Below, piece after piece: positions 25,127-28,374 of a DNA stretch of 64,000 nt. A program made the translations under genes and the position numbers. The notes beneath the pieces are model-generated. The model was not told the DNA's origin. It was given only the letters and a program-made list of their open reading frames with translations, and did no database searches. The stretch is from Paraphysomonas bandaiensis (lineage: Eukaryota; Protista; Chrysophyceae), in contig CBFFRP010000406.1 of assembly GCA_965644295.1 (NCBI GenBank), positions 1-64,000 of the forward strand, in the 5' to 3' direction. The stretch's first letter is position 1. Every line of letters begins with the position of its first letter.

Positions 25127-26623
25127 CTACACATCAATGGACTTGTAGCGCATGGAAGTAGTGTCGAACCCTGGCATGGGGAAACTGGTTGCAAAGGTCA
25201 TAACAGTGCGACGCAGAGCTTTCACTTCTTCGCTGGCGACGACAGCTTCTTCGAAGGCCTTGAGTGATTTGCCTGTTGATTTCTGGATTTCGATGGCAAT
25301 GGTGAGGGCCTGATGCAGGAAGTCAGCGACCTGACTGAAGTCCTCTTCCTTCAATCCTCTGGTGGTCAAGGCTGGAGAACCAATACGGACTCCCCCTGGG
25401 GTAAGGGCAGACACATCTCCTGGCACGGTATTCTTGTTTAGAGTAATGGAGCAGTGATCGCAAATGGTCTGCATCTTCGACCCAGTGAGCCCTGTGGGGC
25501 GTAAGTCCCATACAAGTAGGTGGTTCACGGTGCCGCCAGTGGTTAACACGTATCCCTTGTTCATGAGAGCCGAAGCGAGAGCCTTGGCATTGGAGCGAAC
25601 CTGAGCAGCATATTCCTTAAAGGTAGGACTAGCAACTTCCTTCAGCTGGGTGGCGATGGCTGCAATCTGATGCACGTGTGGTCCACCCTGAAGACCAGGA
25701 AAGACTGTCATATTGATCTTTGTCTCGAAGTTGCGAGAGTCTTTGCGGAAAAAAATAACTCCAGCACGGGGGCCCCTGAGGGTTTTGTGCGTTGTGGTGG
25801 TGACAATGTCACAGTACTGGAAGGGGCTCTCGGCCTCTCCAGTAGCGACCAGACCAGAGATGTGCGCCATGTCCATCATCAGCAGGGAGCCATTAGCATC
25901 AGCAATCTTGCGAAAGCGTGCATAATCCAACTCGGCAGGGTATGCGGAATGTCCGCATATAATCATGGCGGGCTTAAAGAGGTTTGCCTGAGCCTCGAGT
26001 GCGTCATAATCGATGAGACCAGTCTCGGGACTGACACGGTAGGGAAGGGATTCAAAGTAGATAGAGGTCGCAGAAACCGCCTTACGAGTACCCTCGGTTT
26101 TGCTGAAGGTGTAAAACCCGTGTGTAAGGTGACCGCCGCTGGGGAGATCAAGGCCCATAATACGATCGTGAGGCTTTAACAATGCCGTAAGTACCTCAAA
26201 ATTGGCGGGGCTACCACTGTAAGGTTGCACATTCACACCCCACTCGTTGGCATCCAGTCCGTAAGCGGCTAGCGCACGATCACGACACATGTTCTCGATT
26301 TGATCAATGTATTCATTACCGCCGTAGTATCGCTTTCCAGGGTATCCTTCAGCGTACTGAATTGAAACAACGAGTAAATAATATGAGAAGAATAAGTCAC
26401 TTGTTGTCTTACTTTGTTCGTCAAGCACGAGCCGAGGCATTCCATGACAGCGCGAGAGGTCAAGTTTTCAGATGCAATAAGCTCGAGACCAGACCACTGC
26501 AGCACTGATTTAGATATCTCACATAAAGTTGATATCACTCACCTGCCTATGCTTCTCACGCTCAATAAGATCGAAGAGCTCAGGGTCATGGTCCAAAAGG
26601 GAAGTCTGGCCAGGAAGTGACAT
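25127..26623 (-). CDS. SHMT: Serine hydroxymethyltransferase, probably cytosolic (3 exons)
   Basis: Spliced [27 protein letters not shown]|[11 protein letters not shown]...LTNK|[16 protein letters not shown] lysine motif [19 protein letters not shown] and [13 protein letters not shown]. No transit peptide. Confidence 0.97.
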
Positions 26624-26777
26624 TTGATATTACTTTTTCAGATATACGGCAGTTAGGCAATTAATGCAGCTATATGTCAAACACTGCAGAGAACTATTTG
26701 TGACCACACACACCATATCCACACCACCACACCGCTCGCAACAGAACAATAAAAAAACAGAACACACCTATGCGTGT

Positions 26778-27187
26778 GTATGTATGTATGTATGTATGTA
26801 TGTATGTATGTATGTATGTATGTATGTATGTATGTATGTATGTATGTATGTATGTATGTATGTATGTATGTATGTATGTATGTATGTATGTATGTATGTA
26901 TGTATGTATGTATGTATGTATGTATGTATGTATGTATGTATGTATGTATGTATGTATGTATGTATGTATGTATGTATGTATGTATGTATGTATGTATGTA
27001 TGTATGTATGTATGTATGTATGTATGTATGTATGTATGTATGTATGTATGTATGTATGTATGTATGTATGTATGTATGTATGTATGTATGTATGTATATA
27101 TGTGTGTATGTATGTATGTATGTATGTATGTATGTATGTATGTATGTATGTATGTATGTATGTATGTATGTATGTATGTATGTATGT
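26778..27187. repeat. (TATG)n microsatellite, about 410 bp
   Basis: Near-perfect array with an interruption near 27098-27105, between divergent SHMT and the lipoyl gene. Confidence 0.99.
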
Positions 27188-27266
27188 GCATTTGTTGTGG
27201 TGTGTTAGTCTTCAGGTTTGAGGGATTAGAGGAATCATATTTCTAATCTACTTCTATATTTCTTAG

Positions 27267-28035
27267 ATGTTGAGTATGTATCGTGGTATCGCTGGGGTTC
27301 TGAGACAGAGGGTTTCTGTTGTCTGCTTCAGAGGATCGTTTCACTCGTCCAGCAGGCTGCTTGATATCGTTACTGTTAATGTGCCTGCTCTCGGCGAGAG
27401 TATAACTGAAGGATCCATTGCAACATGGGAGAAGTCTGTGGGGGATAGTGTTAATGTTGATGACGTCGTCGCTGTTGTTGAAACTGATAAGGTTACAGTT
27501 GATATCAAGTCGCCTTACACAGGAAAGATAGCAGAGCTGATGCATGATGAGGCTGCGACGGTGATGATGATTATTTATATGCATATTTCCTTGTCTGATG
27601 CTGTTTGATTAGATTAATGTTGGTTCTCCGCTGTATAGCGTTGATGTTGATGGCGCAGCCACTGAGACAGCGTCAGCCTCAGGGAGTAACACTGGTGCAG
27701 AAAGTAGCAATCGAGCGGATAGCTCATCCTCATTGTCTCAGAACTCATCTGAAGATCCAAAGGACGCTCATACTATAATTCATCCTTCTGGAAGGAAGTC
27801 TCTGATAAAGTTCTTGGGCAAGCGATCTCGGATTCCTCAAGAGAGGACACATAAGCAATCGTCAACAACTGAGCGTCAGCCTGAGGTACAACAGACAAAG
27901 CCATCGTCCACGAATGAGAAAATATGGAGCCGTGAAGAAATGGAAGGGTACGATGCTGCTTGGTTGGGTCGCCCAAGAGTATCTGATGAAGAGATTGAAG
28001 CTATAGAGAGCGGTGGAGCTACTCTTTTTGGCTGA
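27267..28035 (+). CDS. Mitochondrial lipoyl-domain protein with a KGD4/MRPS36-like C-terminus (intron 27561-27612; about 238 aa)
   Basis: Arg/Ser-rich presequence, then an E2o-type lipoyl domain (VPALGESITEG...VETDKVTVDIKSP..G.I), an S/A-rich linker, SLIKFLGKRS and a terminal SDEEIEAIESGGA. No acyltransferase catalytic domain. Confidence 0.8.
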
Positions 28036-28374
28036 TTGTGATATTTTATTTACGATGAAAGCCTAATCAGACCGACTTAGCTGTAATAATATACTGTATG
28101 AATATGAGAATATGATTCATTTCAGCACCACAGAGATCATTGTGGTAAGGATTCTTTCCCTGCAATTGTCACTATTTAAGTCGTTGTATTTGCTCCTACA
28201 ATCACACGTCATGATATATACTCTTACTGAAATCTGAAATATGCTGTTCGAAAAGTTATCTCAGCTACCTAGCAATACTAGCAATAGCAATGAGTTTTCC
28301 AATTTTGAGTTTTATCGCCTTTTGCTTCGTCCGATTTGCTATAATGATATGAAATTATTACTAGTTTGAAATCT

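Follow-up and report, generated by a model that had tools for sequence, protein, structure and literature searches.

A gene of the chrysophyte Paraphysomonas bandaiensis encodes a protein that joins a lipoyl domain, classified with those of the E2 component of 2-oxoglutarate dehydrogenase (OGDH), E2o, to a C-terminal tail assigned to the KGD4/MRPS36 family, and that lacks an acyltransferase domain. Analysis of the 64,000-nucleotide stretch of DNA in which the gene lies (hereafter, the window), of its transcripts and of its homologues suggests that the product is probably a lipoylated, E3-tethering fourth subunit (KGD4/MRPS36, E3BPo) of mitochondrial OGDH, similar in its logic to E3BP. A lipoylated adaptor had been proposed for this locus in an earlier, sequence-only reading of the window. 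This proposal gained support from the match of the tail to PF10937, from transcripts that contain no acyltransferase exon and from the presence of a separate E2o gene devoid of any peripheral-subunit-binding domain (PSBD).

Gene structure and expression

The lipoyl-KGD4 gene occupies positions 27267-28035 of the plus strand and is made up of two ORF pieces in different frames, which form two exons and together yield a product of 238 aa. As delimited by translation, coding exon 1 (27267..27560, +; aa 1-98) carries the presequence and most of the lipoyl domain, its 98-aa product running from a basic presequence into the lipoyl domain as far as ...HDEAAT. Coding exon 2 (27613..28035, +; aa 99-238 and the stop codon at 28033-28035) has a product of 140 aa, in which the last lipoyl strand INVGSPLYSVDV is followed by a Ser-rich linker and then by GRKSLIKFLGKRS and WLGRPRVSDEEIEAIESGGATLFG. 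The exons are separated by a GT..AG intron of 52 nt in phase 0 (27561..27612, +), located before the last lipoyl strand. The presequence, lipoyl domain, linker, two motifs and stop codon that the sequence-only reading had listed are thus all present, to which the intron within the lipoyl domain has now been added.

The same 52 bases were skipped exactly in contigs from four runs belonging to four studies (RNA or probable RNA); one run was a poly-A metatranscriptome, and for the other three an RNA origin was only guessed, one of them being flagged as probably DNA. These contigs started at 27229-27265 and ended at 28035-28108, the widest spliced extent defining a transcribed region of 27229..28108 (+), and the mRNA was taken to end 35-73 nt past the stop codon. 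No contig from the four runs extended downstream of 28108. Since the transcripts end just past the stop codon, no acyltransferase exon follows the lipoyl-KGD4 gene, and splicing of the lipoyl exon to an acyltransferase domain, the finding that would have spoken against an adaptor, was not seen in cDNA that stops by 28108.

The lipoyl-KGD4 gene is expressed. In addition, a word search with exon 2 retrieved P0001, an ORF from an MMETSP transcript (238 aa, 'type:complete') that is identical (100%) to exon 1 plus exon 2. P0001 was used in all full-length analyses, and the window sequence itself was searched exon by exon. A truncated E2o gene or a mis-called gene was ruled out by the transcripts and by conservation across homologues.

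Upstream of the gene, a (TGTA)x103 microsatellite with 99% matches was observed at 26777-27187, ending about 40 nt before the transcript start. It fills the space between a minus-strand serine hydroxymethyltransferase-like gene (ORF 25127-26440) and the plus-strand lipoyl-KGD4 gene.

The N-terminal region carries an E2o-type lipoyl domain

The first 33 residues (27267..27365, +), delimited by composition and alignment, contain five R/K and one D/E and end in R-G-S-F-H-S-S, and homologues keep an F/Y-H-S-S pattern. Because of this basic composition and the conserved pattern, the segment was read as a presumed mitochondrial presequence, with which it is consistent.

The lipoyl domain spans residues 34-109 (27366..27645, +), is interrupted by the intron and was recognised with Pfam, AlphaFold2 (AF2), Foldseek and NCBIfam. 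In line with what the sequence-only reading had claimed for the N-terminus, residues 36-106 of P0001 matched Biotin_lipoyl (PF00364) with 69.7 bits (E 1.9e-19), and the ETDK lysine that it had pointed out corresponds to K75, the presumed lipoyl-lysine within E-T-D-K-V (codon at 27489..27491, +). E72, T73, D74, K75 and V76 were invariant in 47 aligned full-length sequences. AF2, with 47 homologues as input, predicted a beta-barrel over residues 34-109 with pLDDT values of 86-97, and comparison with solved lipoyl domains by Foldseek gave TM scores of 0.77-0.89 and an rmsd of 1.1-1.3 A.

With regard to the type of lipoyl domain, the top NCBIfam models were sucB TIGR01347 (73 bits), NF004309 (69.5 bits) and actinobacterial SucB (62 bits), with lower scores for the E2p models. 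The nearest lipoyl domains in the organism's own genome were the two of the E2o gene on contig C316 (55% and 49% identity), those of the other E2 genes reaching 32-36%. By these comparisons of sequence, the lipoyl domain of the fusion is of the E2o type.

It is conceivable that the lipoyl domain of a KGD4 adaptor is non-catalytic and serves to dock or anchor E1o or E3, or else has a decoy or regulatory role, in which case lipoylation would not be required. Structural 'anchor' roles have been proposed for unloaded lipoyl domains of OGDHc (Skalidis 2023, PMC10203282), and the organism's own E2o already has two lipoyl domains, so that it is not evident why a third would be needed. However, the E-T-D-K-V lysine turn and the residues surrounding it are invariant in the 47 homologues, as would be expected if lipoylation and recognition by E1o and E3 were under selection. 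We therefore regard a non-catalytic role as distinctly unlikely and favour a lipoylated domain.

Neither exon nor P0001 matched PF00198 (2-oxoacid_dh) in Pfam, and the window was not among the PF00198 loci of the genome; PF02817 (PSBD) was likewise absent from the exons and P0001 at E up to 1. Together with the transcript ends at or before 28108, the lack of a PF00198 match bears out the earlier claim that no E2 catalytic domain is present.

The C-terminal tail matches the KGD4/MRPS36 family

A Ser/Ala-rich flexible linker, delimited by AF2 and alignment, connects the lipoyl domain with the tail (aa 110-157; 27646..27789, +). It was predicted without secondary structure (AF2 pLDDT of about 48-57), and both its sequence and its length vary among homologues. 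The extra 13 bits that the sucB model gained over the linker are most simply explained as low-complexity matches.

The tail (aa ~158-238) contains two conserved motifs. Motif 1, GRKSLIKFLGKRS (aa 158-170; 27790..27828, +), was delimited by alignment and is presumed to be an E3-binding motif equivalent to the N-terminal motif of KGD4, a role inferred from yeast Kgd4 (PMC4214781). Within its ..LIKFLGKRS stretch, nearly invariant in the family, I163 and F165 were invariant and G167, K168 and R169 nearly invariant in the 47 sequences. A comparable P-h-I-K/R-F motif is present in human and yeast KGD4, and motif 1 presumably resembles this N-terminal motif of the human and yeast proteins. Scanned alone, motif 1 of P0001 gave no Pfam match, and that of the homologue P0012 aligned weakly to positions 1-28 of PF10937 (15.8 bits, E 0.046). 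The possibility that motif 1 is a relic of a PSBD was rejected, the PF02817 signal being absent at E up to 1.

Motif 2, WLGRPRVSDEEIEAIESGGATLFG (aa 215-238; 27961..28032, +), was delimited with PF10937, alignment and AF2 and is presumed to be a core-binding motif equivalent to the C-terminal motif of KGD4, as published work would suggest (PMC4214781, PMC9974300). G217, R218, P219, E225 and G232 were invariant in the 47 sequences, and a helix was predicted at residues 223-231 (AF2 pLDDT 77-89). The middle of the tail was predicted to be disordered (pLDDT of about 48-57), with moderate confidence at motif 1 (about 71). This pattern of disorder and local confidence fits short linear binding motifs and, since the motifs are short and linear, their function can be read from them with less than certainty.

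The tail alone (P0001:152-238) matched Kgd4-YMR31 (PF10937) with 25.1 bits (E 5.9e-5), above the gathering cut-off of 22 bits, whereas exon 2 and the full protein, with 20.9 and 18.9 bits respectively, fell below it, which makes the match of this single protein a borderline one. The match covers only 21 residues (214-234), which align to positions 96-116 of the 116 positions of PF10937, and it is here that the sequence-only reading had placed a C-terminal KGD4-like motif. The relationship with the MRPS36/Ymr31 family that it had proposed is clearer among the homologues: 81 of 83 homologous tails matched PF10937 at E up to 0.01 (best E 1.6e-10), and no other family recurred. Homologues reached 37-38 bits (37.9), aligned over positions 24-116 or 48-116 of the model. 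Further, the order of the motifs, their C-terminal position and their spacing (36-56 residues) were conserved among homologues. On the basis of this profile evidence, the tail is assigned to the KGD4/MRPS36 family.

A chance or convergent likeness of short motifs to KGD4, the gene then being a paralogue of E2o that has decayed or been truncated and does not act as an adaptor, would be in keeping with the sub-threshold score of the whole protein and with the shortness of the aligned stretch. It is, however, at odds with the recurrent and exclusive PF10937 matches of the family tails, with the longer alignments of the homologues, with the conserved arrangement of the motifs and with the expression and conservation of the gene across ochrophyte classes, and we judge it very unlikely indeed. 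Membership of the tail in the KGD4/MRPS36 family is therefore retained in what follows.

A search of the PDB with the tail profile gave no match at E up to 10, there being no solved KGD4 for comparison, and an ESM Atlas search with the tail alone gave no usable match. To our knowledge, KGD4/MRPS36 is still unresolved in structures.

Distribution of the lipoyl-KGD4 fusion

A profile word search yielded 211 relatives, to which a further word search with the tail of P0132, confined to longer candidates, added almost none. An exhaustive HMMER search with the tail profile returned 402 clusters when E was limited to 1e-3 and 172 when it was limited to 1e-10. Architectures were counted in about 250 retrieved sequences. 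At least 46 of these were complete fusions consisting of presequence, lipoyl domain and tail, and about 80 were fragments of fusions, many of them ORFs that start at the last lipoyl strand. Such ORFs often have a Q before this strand (26 cases), which fits a read-through CAG acceptor. In the L037 contig, which belongs to a distant homologue, a lipoyl ORF and a KGD4 ORF are split by a phase-0 intron with GT..AG ends, whose position matches that of the intron in the window. About 45 sequences were true stand-alone proteins, in which the presequence directly precedes motif 1.

All fusions bearing an organism name were from ochrophytes (diatom-type, chrysophyte, synurophyte, brown alga, xanthophyte, eustigmatophyte and pelagophyte), and none of these named fusions came from outside Ochrophyta. 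They include those of Ochromonas sp. CCMP1393, Mallomonas marina, Pedospumella encystans, 'Chrysophyte H1', Tribonema minus (KAG5187773.1), Nannochloropsis oceanica (GAB5033204.1), Scytosiphon promiscuus, Laminaria digitata (partial) and Chrysophaeum taylorii, as well as that of Durinskia baltica, a dinoflagellate harbouring a diatom endosymbiont. In the ESM Atlas, the window protein falls in a cluster of 154 members, mostly Bacillariophyta. Clusters of short lipoyl proteins from Chlorophyta (283 aa) and Haptophyta (231 aa) also appeared in a whole-protein search of the ESM Atlas and were left out of the fusion counts.

In databases the fusions are labelled 'dihydrolipoamide S-succinyltransferase', 'lipoamide acyltransferase component of BCKDH', 'single hybrid motif-containing protein' or 'lipoyl-binding domain-containing protein', and also as PDH E2; KGD4 was absent from the database names of the fusions.

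Two observations concern individual ochrophyte lineages. Firstly, P0108 from the pelagophyte Aureoumbra lagunensis is a stand-alone KGD4 of 108 aa with its own presequence, whereas its close pelagophyte relatives P0100 (Chrysophaeum taylorii, 206 aa) and P0112 are lipoyl fusions. This difference could reflect the presence of two genes, a lost lipoyl domain or an isoform with an internal start, and both architectures may exist inside Ochrophyta. Secondly, the brown-algal sequences P0099, P0206 and P0213 have in common an additional conserved segment, ..EDA.AGAFMAGADFVPPKK.., located just upstream of motif 1 and absent in other classes.

OGDH components encoded in the genome

The genome searched comprises 62.6 Mb in 669 contigs. 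A profile of the tail family (83 tails) found exactly one locus in it, the gene in the window (81 bits, E 4.7e-21), and given this single match the fusion protein is the organism's only detectable KGD4. The score of the tail against this profile, like that of the lipoyl domain against Biotin_lipoyl, lies well outside chance expectation. A weak six-frame match to PF10937 at C407:167293-167493 was dismissed as spurious, its ORF having neither motif; the search that gave it missed the window gene.

Six E2 loci with a 2-oxoacid_dh domain were detected. Among them is the separate full-length E2o gene whose confirmation the sequence-only reading had called for, located at C316:5944-7771 (945-2778 in L031) and showing the best sucB match of all E2 loci. 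It encodes two lipoyl domains in tandem, then a linker rich in Pro, Lys and Ser, and the catalytic domain. PF02817 was absent at this locus and present at the other five, on contigs C371, C20, C363, C393 and C294. E1o is encoded by an intronless gene at C72:123565-126429 (1022.8 bits, above the cut-off), and several candidate genes for E3 were found.

Several features of these loci were observed in passing. A single lipoyl domain is usual in eukaryotic E2o; in the gene on C316, a contig of only 18.4 kb, each of the two lipoyl domains has an intron directly after ETDKV. Some of the other E2 genes (2-oxoacid_dh, E3_binding and lipoyl) form pairs with near-parallel exon layouts, namely C294:73170-74770 with C393:29012-30653 and C20:140391-141732 with C363:252902-254213, which could be recent paralogues or uncollapsed haplotypes. 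A second E1o-like gene with several introns, at C152:78041-81565, matched TIGR00239 with 391 + 206 + 68 bits and may be a paralogue encoding 2-oxoadipate dehydrogenase (DHTKD1-like).

These components also bear on whether the fusion serves a different system. The protein might be an adaptor or lipoyl carrier for PDH, BCKDH, 2-oxoadipate dehydrogenase or glycine cleavage, or else a free regulatory or redox lipoyl protein, with its KGD4-like motifs directed at another partner. The labelling of homologues as BCKDH or PDH E2 components would fit such a role, as would the second E1o-like gene and a weak Pfam match to GCV_H (20-23 bits). Nevertheless, these labels are automatic and based on the lipoyl domain only, and the GCV_H match is a generic overlap between hybrid motifs. 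The lipoyl domain, moreover, groups with E2o, the tail is the only KGD4 homologue in the genome, and E2o alone among the E2 loci is without a PSBD; the other E2s have E3-binding domains of their own and need no adaptor. Service to another system thus appears unlikely, and OGDH is the preferred partner.

Comparison with known adaptors

In yeast, residues 1-68 of Kgd4 bind E3 and residues 69-123 bind the Kgd1-Kgd2 core, and homologues were reported in fungi and animals (Heublein 2014, PMC4214781). MRPS36 was likewise placed with its N-terminus on E3 and its C-terminus on E2o, and was proposed to replace the PSBD that is missing from eukaryotic E2o generally (Hevler 2023, PMC9974300). The same study, which reported the family from eukaryotes after a BLAST survey with the bovine protein at a required query coverage of >50%, did not find prokaryotic orthologues. 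The orthologue of KGD4 in Chaetomium thermophilum was named E3BPo (Skalidis 2023, PMC10203282).

The tail of the fusion resembles fungal and animal KGD4/Ymr31/MRPS36 in its variable, disordered middle and its acidic ..E.IE.GGA at the extreme C-terminus, and presumably also in its conserved basic N-terminal motif. The fusion also co-occurs with a PSBD-less E2o, the lack that KGD4 was proposed to offset (PMC9974300). It differs in that the KGD4 proteins described are stand-alone, of about 100-135 aa and without any other domain (PMC4214781, PMC10203282), whereas in the fusion, at 238 aa, the tail is preceded by a complete E2o-type lipoyl domain and some 50 residues of linker. A lipoyl-bearing KGD4 is mentioned in none of PMC4214781, PMC9974300 and PMC10203282, and a literature search, whose coverage did not extend to subscription journals, provisionally found no description of one.

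In functional logic the fusion is reminiscent of E3BP (PDHX, protein X), which is non-catalytic and combines an N-terminal lipoyl domain and a flexible linker with E3-binding and core-binding elements, tethering E3 to a core of E2. In contrast with the fusion, E3BP binds E3 via a folded PSBD (PF02817) and joins the core via a catalytic-like 2-oxoacid_dh domain. The fusion has neither of these and carries two short linear motifs instead; it is about half the size of E3BP and is homologous to it only in the lipoyl domain, hence an analogue. With E2o (sucB/DLST/Kgd2) it shares the type of lipoyl domain, the intron position and, frequently, the database label, but not the acyltransferase domain. 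Bacterial proteins of ~200 aa that consist of a lipoyl domain and a PSBD (PF00364 + PF02817), seen as ESM Atlas clusters, are also devoid of a catalytic domain; their E3-binding element is the PSBD rather than KGD4 motifs, and they are noted here as a lead only.

Proposed function

All steps of the following model are inferred, from import and lipoylation to the two binding events and the use of the lipoyl domain in catalysis. Once the protein has been imported and its presequence removed, the disordered tail would behave as it does in yeast and mammals: motif 1 (..LIKFLGKRS) would bind the E3 dimer, and the E1o-E2o core would be the docking site of the C-terminal motif (GRP..S.EEIEAIESGGA). 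The tail could in this way stand in for the PSBD missing from the organism's own E2o. The lipoyl domain, carried on its flexible linker of about 50 residues and presumably lipoylated at K75, would provide an extra swinging arm held beside the tethered E3. This arm would receive the succinyl group from E1o, give it up at E2o and be reoxidised by E3, a role equal to that of the E3BP lipoyl domain in the PDH complex.

Origin of the fusion

The position of the phase-0 intron is common to the fusion, to lipoyl domain 1 of the organism's own E2o gene and to the homologue L037. This shared position and phase argue that the exon structure of the lipoyl domain derives from an E2o gene that was duplicated at the DNA level. 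E3BP arose from E2p, and the lipoyl-KGD4 protein may, in a similar manner, represent the older state of the family, KGD4/MRPS36 having originated when an E2o duplicate lost its catalytic domain, and opisthokont KGD4 being a remnant left after loss of the lipoyl domain. The E2o-type lipoyl domain, the shared intron, the presence of the fusion as sole KGD4 in the genome and its spread over at least six ochrophyte classes are consistent with such a history. Weighing on it are the restriction of all named fusions to ochrophytes and the existence of stand-alone forms with their own presequence, and we consider it possible but rather doubtful.

Implications

Recognition of KGD4/MRPS36 as an OGDH subunit dates only from 2014, and the lipoyl-KGD4 fusion offers a first lead on the origin of KGD4/MRPS36. 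Dozens of proteins that databases call E2 succinyl- or acyl-transferases or "single hybrid motif" proteins have no catalytic domain, and their annotation can be corrected. The proposed function also provides an experimental handle, given that the protein should be detectable by anti-lipoate blot and mutable at one lysine. If the model is true, the OGDH of a major group of marine primary producers would resemble PDH with its E3BP.
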